From positions 248,001 to 312,000 of IMG/VR virus record IMGVR_UViG_3300032334_002567: DNA of 64,000 nucleotides. One strand, 5' to 3'. The notes under the pieces were generated by a model that was given only the letters and a program-made list of their open reading frames with translations, ran no database searches and was not told where the DNA came from. The position numbers were made by a program, and so were the translations under genes. Shown in pieces: positions 24,380 through 45,907 of the stretch (position 1 is the first letter of the stretch; each line of letters opens with the position of its first letter).

Positions 24380-25465
24380 ATGATTCCACAGGGTGAGTTG
24401 ATTTTCTGGGGGCCGAAGCATGAGGACAATCTTCCTATGCCTAGTAGGGAGGATAGGTTGAAGCGGGTGGACTCTGGCAATCCTTCTAGTCCGTTTAGCC
24501 GGTTCGTTGGTAATGAGCGGGCTGTTCGGAAGATGCAGGCTGCTGTGTATAGTGCGTTGGGCCGTCCGAATCATATCCAGCGTGATTTGGCGTTTGCCAT
24601 CTTTGGGCCTGCGTCTAGTGGCAAGACTACTTTGGCTCGGCTTTATGCTGATTCTGTAGAGTTGCCGTTGGTGGAGGTTAGTCCCAAGAGTATTCGGACT
24701 ACGGATGATCTTTTGGAGTTCATTCGTGCGACTTTGCTGGAGACAGAGGTTCCGTTGGTGGATTGTGGTACGGATCAGTTTGTGTTGCCTCCGATGGTGG
24801 TGTTTATTGACGAGGTTCATGCACTGAGTCGTTCGGTGGTGGATGGTCTGTTGAAGGCTACGGAATATAAGGATGCCATTCTTGTGACGGACGGTGGTTC
24901 AACCGTTGACTGTCATAACGTGACATGGATGATTGCGACAACGGATGAGGGTCGGTTGTTTGATGCGTTCCGTACTCGTTTTAGCCCGATTATGTTGCAG
25001 TATTTGACTAAGGCCGAAGTGGCGAAGATTGTTAGCATGGCTCATAAGGATTTGCCTTCTGAGGTGTGTATGTTGGTGGCTCACTATAACAGTCGGATTC
25101 CCCGTAAGGCTTTGGAGTTTGCTAGGTACATGAAGATGGTTCGTGATATGCACCCTGAGATGACTTGGGAGGACGTTGCCCGTCAGGTTGCTGGTGATGA
25201 GGGGATTGACGAGTATGGGATGCAGGAGCTTCATTTGAAGGTCTTGCGGGCTTTGGGTCAGGGGCCGGTTGCTCGTAATCGTATAAGTTTGGTTGTGGGC
25301 AGGAAGATTGAGGAAGTGGAGCGGTACATCATGCCGTGGCTGTTGAGTGAGACAGAGGATCAGCCTGCGATGGTTACTGTGTCGAGCAAGGGCTATGTGA
25401 TTACTAGGGCTGGGCTTGACGAATTGGAGAAACGTGGTATAAGCTATGTGGCTGAAGCTGCGTGA
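24380..25465 (+). CDS. ruvB: RuvB-like Holliday junction branch migration AAA+ ATPase
   Basis: F..FVGN, GPASSGKTTLA (Walker A), FIDEVHAL (Walker B), ATT..G.L..AFRTRF, PR.A, GID..G...GP...E.Y..P.L C-terminal winged helix; AGGAGG RBS before ATG 24380. Confidence 0.8.
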   Translation: MIPQGELIFWGPKHEDNLPMPSREDRLKRVDSGNPSSPFSRFVGNERAVRKMQAAVYSALGRPNHIQRDLAFAIFGPASSGKTTLARLYADSVELPLVEVSPKSIRTTDDLLEFIRATLLETEVPLVDCGTDQFVLPPMVVFIDEVHALSRSVVDGLLKATEYKDAILVTDGGSTVDCHNVTWMIATTDEGRLFDAFRTRFSPIMLQYLTKAEVAKIVSMAHKDLPSEVCMLVAHYNSRIPRKALEFARYMKMVRDMHPEMTWEDVARQVAGDEGIDEYGMQELHLKVLRALGQGPVARNRISLVVGRKIEEVERYIMPWLLSETEDQPAMVTVSSKGYVITRAGLDELEKRGISYVAEAA

Positions 25466-26198
25466 ACCAATAAGTTCGATTTTGCACACTGAAGAAGTGA
25501 ACCACTTCCATAGATTTAGCAAGTTCTGTGAGTGAACCACTATAGGGAATTTTACACAAAGCCGTAGTGAACCTTGGATGATGATTTTATATTCGCACTG
25601 AGTGAACCATTAGAAGAGATTTTACATGCCCCACGAGTGAACCATTGAAGCCGATTTTACATGATGAAATAGTGAACCACGGTTTAGGATTTTACATTTT
25701 GACAGAGTGAACCAGCCTCGAAGATTTTACACTGAAGTTGAGTGAACCAGGGACCGGGATTTTACATGGGATCCACAGTGAACCAAGTGGTACGATCTTA
25801 CAGTCAAGAAGAGTGAACCATCAAAAGCAATTTTATAGCGACGTTGAGTGAACCAGACTTTCGGATTTTACATCACGACCGAGTGAACCATATCCGCTGA
25901 TTTAAATAACGGAAAAGAGTGAATCACGCAATACGATTTTTAACACAACGCCCGAGTGAACCAAGAAAACGGATTTCAACATAATCCGATAGTGAACCAT
26001 TGGGCATTTTTTTGCAATGAGAGCGAGTGAACCAAATAGATCGATTTTACATACCGTGCGAGTGAACCAGGGGAGAAGATTTTATAGGTTTGGAGAGTGA
26101 ACCGTGTAGATCGATTTAGCATACAGTTCGAGTGAACCAATTCTTCAGATTTTACATGATGAGTAAGTGAACCATAAATTTGATTTAGCATAAAGGAA
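25460..26198 (+). ncRNA. TIGR-like dual-repeat guide RNA array 1 (about 21 units of 35 nt)
   Basis: alternating (G)AGTGAACCA and GATTTTACA repeats separated by unique 8-nt spacers; edge repeats at 25460, 25495, 25530 ... 26130, 26165. Confidence 0.88.
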
Positions 26199-26543: not shown

Positions 26544-27377
26544 ATGCCTTACCAGCAAAGATTTTTGGTTTTGGATGGCAGCGAAACTTTTAATTATAAT
26601 AGGGCTTCTTCTGATGTTAAGAGTAAACAACCAGCGGCTAAGTTTTGTCCCATTCTTCTGAGTGTTCCAGATAATATCTTCTCAAATTGTAAAAACATTG
26701 AGGATCGTCTTGAAGATTGGGTGAAGAAGGTTTACGCCCAAAAGAATGAATTGCAGCTTTGGTCTGGACATATGTTGGTTGTAATGACAGAGGAGCAGTG
26801 TAGTTCTAATCATCAGATGAATCTTGTATTTAATAGTTATAATTGGAATAATGTTTTACCTTCTTGGCTGAATGTTCCTACTGATGCTACTACAGCAATT
26901 ACATTTGTTAAGGATGTTGGCGTTAATCTTCCTGAGTTTGAGCCTGTAATTAGTCAAGAATCAAAGACAAGTTACGAGTACGCTATTATCTTGAGGAAGA
27001 GATTTGAGATGGGAGAACCGGCTATTGCTAAGGATGCTGGTTTGAGTTGTCGTTATGCTAAGGAAATTATTGGTGGTAGGTTTTTGCTTGGAGAGCCTAC
27101 TATTGCCCAGCATGAACGTGCTGCTGACTTGTATGCTGAGAAGATCAGGGAGTGGCGTTTGTGGGGAGAGTTCAGTCATGAAACCCTGATGACGAGTCCG
27201 GTTTGGATGTATCATTATGCCAAGGATTTTTGTGGAGGTCGTTTGCCTGAGAATCTCCATAATCGGATGTTGATGATGAGTGTGATGGAACCGAATAATT
27301 ATTGGGTGAAGCGGTATAGTGCCAAGAAGTATCAGAAGAAGAAGCGGGCGCCAAAAGCTAATTTAGAAAATGCTTGA
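26544..27377 (+). CDS. phage helical-repeat family protein
   Basis: YA..I...RF..GEP.IA repeats; GRLPENLHNRML...NYWVK. Confidence 0.75.
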   Translation: MPYQQRFLVLDGSETFNYNRASSDVKSKQPAAKFCPILLSVPDNIFSNCKNIEDRLEDWVKKVYAQKNELQLWSGHMLVVMTEEQCSSNHQMNLVFNSYNWNNVLPSWLNVPTDATTAITFVKDVGVNLPEFEPVISQESKTSYEYAIILRKRFEMGEPAIAKDAGLSCRYAKEIIGGRFLLGEPTIAQHERAADLYAEKIREWRLWGEFSHETLMTSPVWMYHYAKDFCGGRLPENLHNRMLMMSVMEPNNYWVKRYSAKKYQKKKRAPKANLENA

Positions 27378-27401: not shown

Positions 27402-27407
27402 GGTTTT

Positions 27408-27555
27408 AACCAAGGTAGTCGATTTTTTAAGTTCAAATAGTGAACCATATTGCCGGATTTTATATCAGGCTGAAGTGAACCATAGCAAAGGATTTTGCAT
27501 CGGCTGAAGAGTGAACCATCGCCCAGTGATTTCAACAAGATCAACAAGTGAATCA
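27408..27555 (+). ncRNA. TIGR-like array 2 (about 4 units)
   Basis: AACCA-aggtagtc-GATTTTTTA-agttcaaa-TAGTGAACCA-tattgccg-GATTTTATA-tcaggctg-AAGTGAACCA-tagcaaag-GATTTTGCA-tcggctgaa-GAGTGAACCA-tcgcccagt-GATTTCAACA-agatcaac-AAGTGAATCA. Confidence 0.85.
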
Positions 27556-28085
27556 TGAATCTGAAGTTTGGCATTAAACCGAGTGACGACGATTGGACGG
27601 CAGAAAAAGAGCTTTCTTATAAAGCTGCTAAGGCTGCTTTTCAAAAGTTTTTTAATGGTGAAAAATTAAGTCGTGAATTAGAGAAGATTATTGCGTCAGA
27701 CGCTACTTGGAGCTGTCAGTATGCTGCTGCATTAAAGGATAGGTTTATACTGGGCGAACCTATTATTGCTTCTAAAGCGAGAACAGCAGGTTGGTATGCT
27801 CGTCATATTATCCGGGGTCCGTGGCCTGAAGGCGAGTCTGGAATATCCCAAAGTGCATATTTCGTATGTGCATATATTTGTGATGTTTTAAACGGGAGCA
27901 GGGTATCTGATTTAATTCACAGAAATATGTTGGCTTTGCTTATAGAAAACCCATCAGATTATTGGGTGCTTGAATATATGCACTATAGAGAATGGCTTGA
28001 TGGTCACGTTGCAGAGCCTAGTTGGGTTCGTCAGGGAAATTGGAATTATGGCGGGGTTACGCAAGAATATTTAAATTCGAATTAG
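27555..28085 (+). CDS. phage helical-repeat family protein
   Basis: YA..L..RF.LGEP.IA, YA..II.GPWPEGE, IHRNML...DYWV. Confidence 0.75.
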   Translation: MNLKFGIKPSDDDWTAEKELSYKAAKAAFQKFFNGEKLSRELEKIIASDATWSCQYAAALKDRFILGEPIIASKARTAGWYARHIIRGPWPEGESGISQSAYFVCAYICDVLNGSRVSDLIHRNMLALLIENPSDYWVLEYMHYREWLDGHVAEPSWVRQGNWNYGGVTQEYLNSN

Positions 28086-29046: not shown

Positions 29047-29539
29047 AAAAGTTATTTTTGATAATGACGAACATTCTATAACGGTTAAACCCGTTACGTT
29101 AATTTTCAATAATACTTATGGGGAGAGTGTATATCCTGAACGGGTAATGATTGATTCAAATATGACTTTGGATCATTTTAAAACCCTAAAGGAGATTGAT
29201 CCTTATACGGCTGCTTTTTTTAAATTTGTTGTGGATGATTATCCTCATCCTGTGATGAAGAGTTTTCTTGAGAAGTCGGCAATTGGATGTCGTCATTTAA
29301 TTGGATTGTTTTCTTTGAGCTTGGAGCTGCTGAGTCAACAGAAAAAGTTCGGTTGGAAGTATCCAGAGGCTAATCTTCATCCTAGACAACAGTTAAATTT
29401 AGCAGATGCTTTGATTGTTTTTGGGCAACCAGAGCGATTTGTTAAATTGGTGAAATATGTGCAAGCTGGGTTCTTTGACCAGTATCAAATGTGTGCAAAA
29501 GAATCTTGGCGTGATGAAGCGTTCAGGGTGATGTCTTGA
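29036..29539 (+). CDS. hypothetical protein
   Basis: 167-aa ORF, GGAG RBS. Confidence 0.65.
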   Translation: METEKVIFDNDEHSITVKPVTLIFNNTYGESVYPERVMIDSNMTLDHFKTLKEIDPYTAAFFKFVVDDYPHPVMKSFLEKSAIGCRHLIGLFSLSLELLSQQKKFGWKYPEANLHPRQQLNLADALIVFGQPERFVKLVKYVQAGFFDQYQMCAKESWRDEAFRVMS

Positions 29540-29563
29540 CATTAGTGTTTTCTGTGGTATACT
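29536..29563 (+). promoter_or_regulatory. sigma70-type promoter of the putative sRNA
   Basis: TTGACA-16 bp-TATACT with extended TGn. Confidence 0.8.
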
Positions 29564-29569
29564 GATCGG

Positions 29570-29766
29570 GCCGATCAAAACTTACCGTGCTTGTGCTGCT
29601 ATGGCATCCAGCAGAAACGGTGACTCAGCGGAAGGTAGTCGGCTGATCTGCCCGTAAGACTCCGGGCAGTTAGCTAAACGTCCGCAGTTCATAACACATT
29701 CACCCTCCGTCCTTTCTAATGTGTGTATGAATAGGTCTGCCTCCTCAAAAGAGGCAGACTTTTTTT
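29570..29766 (+). ncRNA. putative ~200-nt structured small RNA
   Basis: lies between a promoter and an intrinsic terminator, no convincing ORF; helices ACCGT/ACGGT, CTGCT/AGCAG, GCGGA/TCCGC, CTGCCCG/CGGGCAG, TTCATAACACATT/AATGTGTGTATGAA. Confidence 0.7.
29735..29766 (+). terminator. intrinsic terminator
   Basis: GTCTGCCTC-ctcaaaa-GAGGCAGAC followed by T7. Confidence 0.85.
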
Positions 29767-29809: not shown

Positions 29810-29965
29810 ATGGCTAAGGATGATAAGCCCCAGTTCGATCCTGATAGTGATGATGAGTATGACTATCTCAAGGAGAATTGGGAACCGGGTGATGAGCCTA
29901 TGAATGATCGTCAGCGTCGTGAAAATGAACAGTTGGATGAAGAGTACCGTCGTAACAAGTTTTAA
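29810..29965 (+). CDS. small acidic protein (51 aa)
   Basis: AGGAG RBS; MAKDDKPQFDPDSDDEYDYLKENWEPGDEPMNDRQRRENEQLDEEYRRNKF; below the ORF-track cutoff. Confidence 0.65.
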   Translation: MAKDDKPQFDPDSDDEYDYLKENWEPGDEPMNDRQRRENEQLDEEYRRNKF

Positions 29966-29986: not shown

Positions 29987-30898
29987 ATGGGTAAGGCTAA
30001 GAAGGCGACTTTAAGTGAAGATGCAATTGAAGTTTTGAGTGGTCTTGGGGAGATTACTCGACTTGATAAAGATTTGAAAAAGCTAATTCGAACTTTGAAT
30101 CGTGATGAGGTTCGGTGCATTGTGAACTATTATTACAATGTGCAGGAGAACCGGATGAGGTCTTCTAAGCAGATTGATGCTGCCAGTAAGGCTGGTACTC
30201 CGCATGATCTGATGGTTTATCTGAATGCCCAAACTCAAGTTTTGGAAAATCAGATTGCTAAGGCTATGGATGAGTGGACTGAGGGGCATCCTGTAGCTAA
30301 GGCTTTGAAGGACAATGTTTATGGTATTGGCCCGATTATTTCAGCGGGTCTGGTTGCTCATTTTGATATTCGTCGGGCTGCTACTGCTGGTGCATTCTGG
30401 CGATATGCTGGTCTTGACCCCACATCTGAGTGGAACAAGGGTGAGAAGCGGCCTTGGAATGCAGCTTTGAAAACTTTGTGTTGGAAGGTCGGCCAGAGTT
30501 TCATGAAGTTCTCTAATGCTACTGATAAAGATACCGGGGCAGCTAAGTGCTTTTACGGTGATCTTTATCGTCAGAAGAAGGCTGAATTGGTTGCTAAGAA
30601 TCAGGGTGGTGGATTTAAGGGTCTGGCGGATAGTGTGTTGAAGGCTAAGAAGTTTCGTGATGTCGCAACTAAAGCAAAATATGAATCAGGGATGCTTCCT
30701 GATGGTCATATTGATGCTATGGCTCGTCGCTGGGCTGTGAAGCTGTTTCTGAGTAATCTGCATGAACTTTGGTGTGCAGCAGAGGGAATTCCGTGTCCTC
30801 GGCCTTATTCGATGGCGATTCAGGGCCATGCTCATTACATCATGCAGCCTGAACTGGCTGATTTGATTAATGTTTGGAAGAATGAAGCTAGGATTTAA
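29987..30898 (+). CDS. TasA-like Nop-domain RNA-binding protein (IS110/IS116 C-terminal fold, no nuclease domain)
   Basis: coiled-coil then YGIGPIISAGLVAHFDI.R..T.GAFWRYAGLDP...G.K..WN..LK..C, Y..LY...K, H....A.R.AVKLFL..L...W; no DEDD RuvC or HNH; dual-repeat arrays nearby. Confidence 0.82.
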   Translation: MGKAKKATLSEDAIEVLSGLGEITRLDKDLKKLIRTLNRDEVRCIVNYYYNVQENRMRSSKQIDAASKAGTPHDLMVYLNAQTQVLENQIAKAMDEWTEGHPVAKALKDNVYGIGPIISAGLVAHFDIRRAATAGAFWRYAGLDPTSEWNKGEKRPWNAALKTLCWKVGQSFMKFSNATDKDTGAAKCFYGDLYRQKKAELVAKNQGGGFKGLADSVLKAKKFRDVATKAKYESGMLPDGHIDAMARRWAVKLFLSNLHELWCAAEGIPCPRPYSMAIQGHAHYIMQPELADLINVWKNEARI

Positions 30899-31116
30899 TG
30901 AATAAAGAAAACGTCAAGTTGCTCCAATGCTTGATTGATAAAGTTGTTCTTGAGCAGGAATGTATCGAGCAGAGAATTAAGAATGGTACTGTCGAGGAAT
31001 CTGCCACAAATGATGAAGTTGTGGCTTTAGCAAAAGGTTTAATTGCTGATATTACACGGGTCAAAAGAATCATACATATGCTAGAAGATGTCAAAAGTAT
31101 GTGTAGATTAACTTAG
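30898..31116 (+). CDS. hypothetical protein translationally coupled to the TasA-like gene
   Basis: TAATG overlap. Confidence 0.6.
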   Translation: MNKENVKLLQCLIDKVVLEQECIEQRIKNGTVEESATNDEVVALAKGLIADITRVKRIIHMLEDVKSMCRLT

Positions 31117-31118
31117 AT

Positions 31119-31213
31119 TTGACGTAAGTTCTTTTGAATAAAGAACTTACGTCAACAGACTTTTTGCCATTTGACGTAAGTGCAGTCTAACAAACGACTT
31201 ACGTCAAATGGCT
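31119..31213. repeat. two tandem inverted repeats with TTGACGTAAGT/ACTTACGTCAA arms
   Basis: TTGACGTAAGTTCTTT-tgaat-AAAGAACTTACGTCAA and GCCATTTGACGTAAGT...ACTTACGTCAAATGGC. Confidence 0.85.
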
Positions 31214-45638: not shown

Positions 45639-45907
45639 GGAAGCGTAGCTCAGTTGGTAGAGCATCGGACTTCAAATAGGAGTGCTTATCGGGAAACTGA
45701 TAAAGTAGAACTGCTCAAATTCGGTGAACGCTTAACTGCCAATACCGAGCCAAGCCTAGAAATAGGAAGGTGTAGAGACTTGACGGGCAGCACCTAAAGT
45801 TGAAAAACAATGGTGAAGGTAAAGTCCAGACCACAAACAGAAATGGTAACGAAAGTTATAGTGGTAAGTTAATCCGTTGGTCCTGGGTTCGAGTCCCAGC
45901 GCTTCCA
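45639..45907 (+). tRNA. tRNA-Lys(UUU) interrupted by a group I intron (exons 45639-45672 and 45869-45907)
   Basis: GGAAGCG/CGCTTCC acceptor; spliced loop CT-TTT-AA; T arm CTGGG-TTCGAGT-CCCAG. Confidence 0.85.
45673..45868 (+). ncRNA. self-splicing group I intron (IC3-like), 196 nt, no ORF
   Basis: P1 ACTTC/GGAGT with U.G at the 5' splice site; CAAATTCGGTGAA, ATACCGAGCCAAG, GTGTAGAGACTTGACGG and AAGGTAAAGTCC core elements; terminal G. Confidence 0.85.

Follow-up and report, generated by a model that had tools for sequence, protein, structure and literature searches.

Among described RNAs, the closest in kind to the one reported here are the small RNAs (sRNAs) with C/U-rich, anti-Shine-Dalgarno (anti-SD) loops, namely NfeR1, AbcR1/2 of rhizobia, the CcsR 'cuckoo' RNAs and RsaE/RoxS of Firmicutes. 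These are stand-alone RNAs of 100–200 nt with a sigma-70-type promoter, an intrinsic terminator, several hairpins and a loop complementary to ribosome binding sites (RBSs). Phages carry 'morons', independent promoter-gene-terminator units that lie between unrelated genes and at different places in related phages, and also make stable RNAs without a known function, such as RNAs C and D of T4. Two further systems are relevant because of what lies next to this locus: the tigRNAs, which bind the Tas protein and are processed to ~36 nt from TIGR arrays, where edge and loop repeats alternate around two 8–9-nt spacers in tandem units of 35–36 nt, and the IS110 bridge RNA, a multi-hairpin RNA of ~180–200 nt with internal loops, encoded upstream of a gene for a Nop-like RNA-binding fold. 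The bridge RNA comes from the non-coding end of an IS110 element, adjacent to a DEDD + Tnp recombinase, and two of its internal loops have halves that complement target and donor DNA.

Here we describe an RNA gene at positions 29536–29766 of a 64,000-nt stretch of DNA (hereafter the window, positions 248,001 to 312,000 of its record) from an uncultured 381-kb jumbo phage (IMGVR_UViG_3300032334_002567). The RNA has all of the listed attributes of the anti-SD sRNAs, but differs from NfeR1, AbcR, CcsR and RsaE in having no sequence or structure match in Rfam, in bearing the motif in one loop where theirs is usually repeated, and in being encoded by a phage. It is organized and distributed like a moron, but its cargo is a non-coding RNA, not a protein, and the family is new. 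Like the tigRNAs, it is encoded within 3–4 kb of genuine TIGR arrays, directly upstream of a tasA unit, with a promoter like that of one array; unlike them, it has no edge or loop repeats, no 35–36-nt periodicity and no dual-spacer layout, and its distribution is uncoupled from tas genes. It shares size, architecture and position with the bridge RNA, but there is no DEDD/Tnp recombinase, there are no element ends, no guide-like complementarity to flanking DNA was found, and nothing IS110-like adjoins the second copy of the RNA.

Our preferred reading, to which we assign a probability of about 0.5, is that this is an autonomous phage sRNA (an 'RNA moron') that probably acts in trans via the pyrimidine-rich loop of its third hairpin. 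It represents a real, new, lineage-restricted phage sRNA family of a familiar general type.

Results

A self-contained RNA gene upstream of tasA

The features of the locus are as follows.

29536–29563, + strand: sigma-70-type promoter, TTGACA, extended -10 TG and TATACT, 11/12 matches
29564–29581, + strand: variable 5' leader, including the palindrome GATCGGGCCGATC (29564–29576)
29582–29623, + strand: hairpin 1, built of a 7-bp outer stem (invariant), an internal loop and a 5-bp inner stem (CUGCU/AGCAG) below a tip that varies
29610–29645, + strand: 36-nt core, CAGCAGAAACGGTGACTCAGCGGAAGGTAGTCGGCT, identical in both phage lineages
29624–29627, + strand: single-stranded linker CUCA, invariant, inside the 36-nt core
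29628–29685, + strand: hairpin 2, with conserved outer stem (GCGGA/UCCGC) and internal loops (AG; AGUC/AA)
29687–29732, + strand: hairpin 3, a 14-bp stem with one bulged G
29701–29717, + strand: apical loop of hairpin 3, CACCCUCCGUCCUUUCU, pyrimidine-rich and anti-SD-like, with three alleles
29733–29766, + strand: intrinsic terminator, 11-bp stem, 7-nt loop and U7 tail, almost invariant, second phage included
29765–29775, + strand: outside the RNA, phage-specific promoter-like motif TTGTACCCTAT, at the start of the 51-aa ORF/tasA unit

The promoter consists of a -35 TTGACA (29536–29541), which overlaps the stop codon of an upstream 167-aa ORF, a 16-nt spacer, the TG (29555–29556) and a -10 TATACT (29558–29563). 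Only two + strand sites in the 64-kb window have at least 11/12 matches together with the TG, this promoter and a site at 27374. We compared eight distinct variants of the RNA: seven are strain versions of the window phage, drawn from metagenome contigs of one phage species, and the eighth lies in a related jumbo phage (L089/L090). The -35 and the TG are fixed in 8/8 variants and the -10 is fixed in the seven strain variants, while the spacer varies; the L089 copy has the -10 TATGTT in a promoter of the same type as in the window phage (TTGACA-16-TGgTATGTT). Transcription is predicted to start near 29570, and 9 nt of the 5' leader are missing in most strains. At the other end, the terminator stem-loop (29733–29761) has 11 bp, six of them G-C pairs, followed by seven T, and is the strongest of the terminator-like sites in 27–32 kb. 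The motif TTGTACCCTAT comes directly after the T-run; thus, the 51-aa ORF and tasA appear to have a phage-type promoter of their own, and the RNA to be a separate unit. The predicted product is ~165–200 nt long, with three conserved hairpins and the terminator hairpin.

No ORF in the region is conserved among the variants, because indels of 5, 9 and 19–20 nt break all reading frames. A small ORF of 18 aa from the ATG at 29601 was rejected, as it has no RBS and its frame is broken by indels in other variants. A type I toxin-antitoxin arrangement was likewise rejected: the terminator is one-directional, and the adjacent 51-aa protein is acidic and soluble-looking, unlike a membrane peptide. ARAGORN found no tRNA or tmRNA in the RNA region, and a search of the region with Rfam 15 at the gathering threshold (riboswitches, 6S, tmRNA, SRP, known sRNAs, ribozymes) gave no match; permissive thresholds yielded noise, the best sub-threshold matches inside the RNA scoring ~16 bits with E values of at least 3. 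An initial sequence-only reading of this DNA had proposed a consensus promoter, a strong terminator and no convincing ORF at 29536–29766, and each of these is borne out (11/12 matches with the TG; 11 bp with T7; broken frames), as is its view that the region encodes a stand-alone structured non-coding RNA, without a match to a housekeeping RNA or any Rfam family. A promoter, an intrinsic terminator, the lack of an ORF and a conserved secondary structure are marks of the class of stand-alone, trans-encoded sRNA genes, and all four are present here. Judged by comparison of sequences, 29536–29766 is a real structured RNA gene, predicted to be transcribed independently from its own promoter to its own terminator.

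The structure has an invariant core and variable tips

The + strand of the region (~200 nt) folds with a predicted energy of -75.2 kcal/mol (z = -4.4), a value equalled in 0/200 shuffled sequences, and the fold of the - strand is clearly weaker (z = -2.4). The L089 copy, folded alone, forms the identical four hairpins (z = -3.5), with a nearly unchanged terminator. In the eight-sequence alignments, standard pairing is seen in 98.9% of cells for the 59 modelled pairs, which include 12 additional pair types. Changes in the stems are mostly transitions that preserve pairing (U-A to U.G, G.U to A-U, C-G to U.G), and the C-to-U and A-to-G changes that yield G.U pairs fit the + strand only. Paired columns vary less often than unpaired ones, 17/107 (16%) versus 23/67 (34%; Fisher p = 0.009). 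The basal stem of hairpin 2 is maintained via G.U/A-U/U.G exchanges, and the stem of hairpin 3 has a compensatory series, U-A / U.G / C-G, at 29692:29727. Covariation among homologs had been suggested as a check on the structure; the standard pairing and this one series support it, but changes on both sides are limited to a single pair, and a shuffle control for covariation was not significant. Since, in addition, seven of the variants come from one species, the covariation is supportive rather than compelling, and it lends the predicted structure modest support.

The three stem-loops initially proposed stand as three conserved hairpins, but the 5' palindrome does not belong with them: it overlaps the expected start and is absent from most strains, so the conserved RNA comprises hairpins 1–3 and the terminator. 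Within it, the core CAGCAGAAACGGUGACUCAGCGGAAGGUAGUCGGCU (36 nt) reaches across the linker from the 3' arm of hairpin 1 to the 5' arm of hairpin 2. Hairpins 1 and 2 have unconstrained tips, which are freely deleted or replaced by 5-nt and 19–20-nt indels. The tip of hairpin 1 is AUGGCAUCC, or 14 nt, or 12 nt, and the distal 19–20 nt of hairpin 2 (29648–29667) are dispensable, being deleted or replaced in 6/8 variants. RNA alleles are shuffled among strains; compared with strain L068, the RNA has 10–12 substitutions per 100 nt plus indels, and the flanking coding DNA 2–12 per 100 nt. By inspection we recognised no K-turn or box C/D in the invariant core and no repeated GGA.

The RNA occurs in two phages, in unrelated contexts

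The second phage, L089/L090, is a different but related jumbo phage, found by a scan with an invariant 26-mer. Against the covariance model its RNA reaches 101 bits, and the identity is 77.5% over 240 nt; other nucleotide matches between the L089 locus and the window are shorter, have 68–76% identity and lie in protein-coding regions. By this measure two related freshwater jumbo phages have the RNA in common; a recent horizontal transfer, and not long-term constraint, may explain why the whole module is nearly identical in both. In L089 the RNA sits between a gene for an SNF2-family helicase and one for an AAA ATPase. There is no tas gene, TIGR repeat or TTGTACCCTA motif within 8.6–11 kb of the RNA in L089/L090, and no tas relative was detected on the 144-kb contig of the second phage.

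Two covariance models (R1 and R2), run over about 100 loci (roughly 450 kb), matched the RNA itself and L089/L090 only; with these models about 60 other Tas loci gave no match to the RNA. Contigs of 187–323 kb that carry the closest tasA relatives (63–64% identity) lack both conserved RNA blocks, and the aligned regions upstream of those tasA genes show no conservation and contain nothing similar within 3–4 kb. No RNA lies behind the helicase homologues of nine further phages, a set that includes tasA-bearing contigs of 251 kb and 323 kb, and synteny searches via the upstream 167-aa protein, the L089 ATPase and the L089 helicase gave no more copies. In the viral collection, the 26-nt core is found in the window phage and L089/L090, and the second conserved block in the identical set of contigs; none of 185,579 bacterial and archaeal genomes contains the core. 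An exact-pattern scan found the hairpin-2 tip in the window phage only. Searches of GenBank phages (blastn/tblastn) gave no relative of the RNA region or of a 985-aa protein, and only distant matches (<40% identity) for the helicase and a MoxR-like ATPase.

The patchy distribution points to a mobile promoter-RNA-terminator unit that is uncoupled from TIGR-Tas in both directions. In this comparison the promoter, the terminator, the stems and the 36-nt core are conserved, coding capacity is lacking, and the two contexts are unrelated. The RNA is a compact, apparently mobile module in which an invariant core is clearly divided from variable tips, which recommends it for simple genetics and as the founder of a new Rfam family. 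Jumbo-phage small RNAs are still nearly unexplored.

A pyrimidine-rich loop and the search for its targets

The loop of hairpin 3 was correctly described by the sequence-only reading as 17 nt long at 29701–29717; its sequence, CACCCTCCGTCCTTTCT, is unique within the window. The first of its three alleles is CACCCUCCGUCCUUUCU or CCCCUCCGUCCUUUCU, the second, CYAACUCUGACCUUUYCU, has lost the CCUCC pentamer, and in the third, (U)CUGCCUCUUUCUU(U), CCUCC is shortened. Because the alleles differ in this way, CCUCC itself is not conserved, and the initial designation of the loop as anti-SD-like must be narrowed: what all three alleles retain is a pyrimidine content of 78–92%, UUUCU and a 4–6-nt complement of AAAGGAG. 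The RBS consensus of the phage is AAGGAG/AAAGGAG, with AAGGAG ahead of 16/69 long ORFs and the AAAGGAG type commonest. It is also conceivable that the conserved UUUCU could instead contact the invariant AGAAA at 29613–29617 within the RNA.

We propose that the RNA is a self-contained promoter-RNA-terminator gene, the RNA equivalent of a phage moron, in an uncultured freshwater jumbo phage clade. Host sigma-70 RNA polymerase would transcribe it from the extended -10 promoter and halt at the intrinsic terminator. The product would form a rigid scaffold presenting one long pyrimidine-rich apical loop (CUCC..UCCUUUCU and variants), through which we infer action in trans: the loop may pair with purine-rich, SD-like sequences (AAAGGAG type) of host or phage mRNAs and so block initiation of translation. 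The invariant core (the base of hairpin 1, the linker and the internal loops of hairpin 2) may additionally serve as a platform for a protein.

Antisense matches of 10–11 nt to the RNA in the 64-kb window are at chance level, and duplex prediction for five unpaired segments against 177 start regions in the window gave no outlier, the best duplex energies falling on spurious small ORFs. An exact scan with the 17-mer loop gave one chance match, inside a CDS. Guide-like complementarity of the internal loops in the 64-kb window is not above chance, and guides of 4–7 nt are beyond statistical assessment. RBS-like sequences quoted initially as partners of the loop do exist in the window, but such short complementarities are no commoner than chance. 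An sRNA that occludes RBSs in trans had also been proposed; the stand-alone sRNA gene is upheld, but the antisense and duplex searches showed no specific RBS target.

The failure of the window searches to find an mRNA target is one of three observations that fit a protein-binding or decoy RNA, in which the core, the loop or both would titrate a host or phage protein; candidates are pyrimidine binders of the Hfq or S1 type, and nucleases or toxins directed at the anti-SD end of 16S rRNA. The others are that the best conserved segment is the mostly structured 36-nt core, identical in two lineages, and that the hairpin-3 loop resembles, in all alleles, a stretched copy of the 3' end of 16S rRNA (..CACCUCCUUUCU). 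Toxins that cut away the anti-SD have been described (for example, PMC12274833). That conservation is highest in a largely paired core is at least as compatible with protein binding as with base pairing. No partner protein, however, consistently adjoins the RNA, the neighbours being entirely different in its two contexts; no known motif such as a K-turn or repeated GGA was recognised, and the likeness to 16S rRNA is confined to short, low-complexity sequence. We regard a protein-binding or decoy role as the main rival, but as distinctly less probable than the trans-acting sRNA.

A further reading, which we consider unlikely, is that the RNA displays on a rigid hairpin a mimic of the 16S 3' tail (the anti-SD sequence), either as a decoy for a host factor that recognises the tail or as a general sponge for SD-bearing host mRNAs. 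As a decoy, such a mimic would protect ribosomes from, or titrate, a factor such as a toxin or defence nuclease that cleaves the anti-SD. On this view the three alleles of the loop would follow host-to-host differences or differences in host defences, and true mimicry of the anti-SD tail would be an unusual phage strategy against the initiation of translation.

The RNA and the neighbouring TIGR-TasA system

The 303-aa protein encoded downstream of the RNA (29987–30898) matches phrog_4285 and, weakly, Pfam Transposase_20, and in sequence matches the solved TasR (9mty, E 1e-11) and TasH (9w04 and others, E 5e-10) structures; its relatives number more than 3,000. By these matches it is a genuine TasA, with the Transposase_20/Nop region only and no recombinase domain. 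The window has two dual-repeat TIGR arrays: a main array (~25460–26170) of about 20 units, and a mini-array (27402–27557) of four units behind a perfect sigma-70 promoter, TTGACA-16-TGgTATAAT, at 27374. The TIGR unit is AGTGAACCA + 8 nt + GATTTTAMMW + 8 nt, and related phages have arrays of 16–45 units with identical repeats. The matches to TasR and TasH and the two arrays confirm the labels 'TasA-like operon' and 'Nop protein' given in the sequence-only reading.

That reading had also offered the RNA as a second RNA partner of the Nop protein, and an accessory or second guide RNA of TIGR-TasA, whether like a bridge RNA or like a tracrRNA, is suggested by its position between the two arrays (~25460–26170 and 27402–27557) and tasA (29987–30898). 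Its promoter closely resembles that of the mini-array, TCTGTGGTATA being common to both, an 8-nt stretch of the RNA, AGGTAGTC, is identical to spacer A of mini-array unit 1, and flanking sequence is known to improve and sharpen tigRNA processing (PMC12045711; bioRxiv 10.64898/2026.09.09.750476). In the same TIGR literature no accessory RNA is reported (PMC12045711; bioRxiv 10.64898/2026.09.09.750476). If the RNA were a conserved partner of TasA, we expected the two to occur together; yet it is absent from the ~60 other Tas loci and from the contigs with the closest tasA relatives, and L089/L090 has the RNA without tas or a TIGR repeat within 8.6–11 kb.

The RNA itself also differs from a tigRNA. 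Neither the edge repeat AGTGAACCA, nor the loop repeat GATTTTAMMW, nor the 35–36-nt periodicity is found in 29564–29766, and the sole CUGA (box-D-like) of the RNA, at 29642–29645, is lost in 6/8 variants. A stem-loop tigRNA, usually one of a tandem series, has a hairpin around box C, spacer A, a loop of ~9 nt, spacer B and box D (at least ~28 nt); in contrast, the loop of hairpin 3 is only 13–19 nt long and the interior of hairpin 1 is asymmetric (7 nt versus 2 nt). The identity of AGGTAGTC is at chance level, since we estimate that ~2 exact 8-mers are expected per target with 254 spacers, and 2–4 are seen; of 127 distinct TIGR units from the window phage and relatives, none fits the RNA gene in tandem, opposite-strand geometry any better than it fits control DNA. 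The promoter style marked by TCTGTGGTATA may simply denote host-polymerase (early) promoters amid a region run by phage motifs. Nor is a bridge-RNA analogue supported: TasA lacks a recombinase domain, and the neighbours in L089 are a helicase and an ATPase. We consider a partnership with TasA improbable: the RNA appears not to be a component of the neighbouring TIGR-TasA system, and nothing here favours a lineage-specific role. The RNA is the one structured RNA between the arrays and tasA in this phage; as it is not a conserved accessory of TIGR-Tas, it should not be taken for a missing processing or partner RNA.

The order of promoter, structured leader, terminator and genes on the same strand is what a cis-acting 5' leader, a riboswitch or attenuator governing read-through into the 51-aa ORF/tasA operon, would show. 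Such a leader is also expected to keep an alternative (antiterminator) pairing and the same gene downstream. We consider this reading highly unlikely: a separate phage promoter motif lies between the terminator and the genes, the downstream gene in the second phage encodes an unrelated AAA ATPase, the only competitor of the terminator stem, CGGGCAG, sits in the strain-variable tip of hairpin 2, and Rfam has no matching riboswitch or leader family. Least credible of all is an RNA anti-CRISPR mimicking a host CRISPR repeat, for although the hairpin-2 tip (CUGCCCG-loop-CGGGCAG, then UUAGCUAAAC) is loosely like type I-F repeats (CUGCC-loop-GGCAG-CUAAGAAA), 6/8 variants have lost or replaced this tip.

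Other features of the arrays, the tasA unit and the window

The mini-array runs straight into an ORF at 27555. In strain L068, both spacers of its unit 2 are replaced and the repeats are kept. No tandem match to the mini-array units with at most one mismatch occurs in the window. In the TIGR array of a related phage, L003 (5919–6026 and 6170–6205), two units have a common spacer B, AGGTAGTT, and different spacers A. The pentamer GGTAG occurs in five of the spacers read from the window, L003 and L004 arrays, where we estimate ~0.5 by chance; a target for these spacers was looked for and not found.

The highly acidic 51-aa ORF (29810–29965) between the RNA and tasA is also present in other phages (L074–L077 and L082–L083), without an adjoining RNA or tasA. 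Four archaeal C/D-box sRNA families gave sub-threshold Rfam matches inside this ORF (best 19 bits, E 0.05), for which its GAT GAT Asp codons are the simplest explanation. A 72-aa ORF after tasA (30898–31116) is present in some strains and cleanly absent in L068, L078 and L080. Beyond the tasA unit, two hairpins (31119–31155 and 31171–31207) have identical 11-bp stems, TTGACGTAAGT/ACTTACGTCAA, and different interiors, with two copies of CGAKGTRATTTGTCATTGTTTT (31227 and 31262) downstream; the pair at 31119–31207 may be an operator or a pair of terminators.

The motif TTGTACCCTA occurs 44 times in 23991–63412, compared with 0.84 expected, and 42 of the copies lie on the + strand, immediately ahead of genes; neither the first 13 kb of the window nor the L089 locus contains it. 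Its placement suggests that it is probably a phage-specific promoter (middle or late, or for a phage polymerase). The window also contains a group I intron at 45662–45849, scoring 52 bits, just over the gathering score, and six tRNA genes (8157, 36552, 36840, 39661, 46124 and 62564) scattered among the phage genes.
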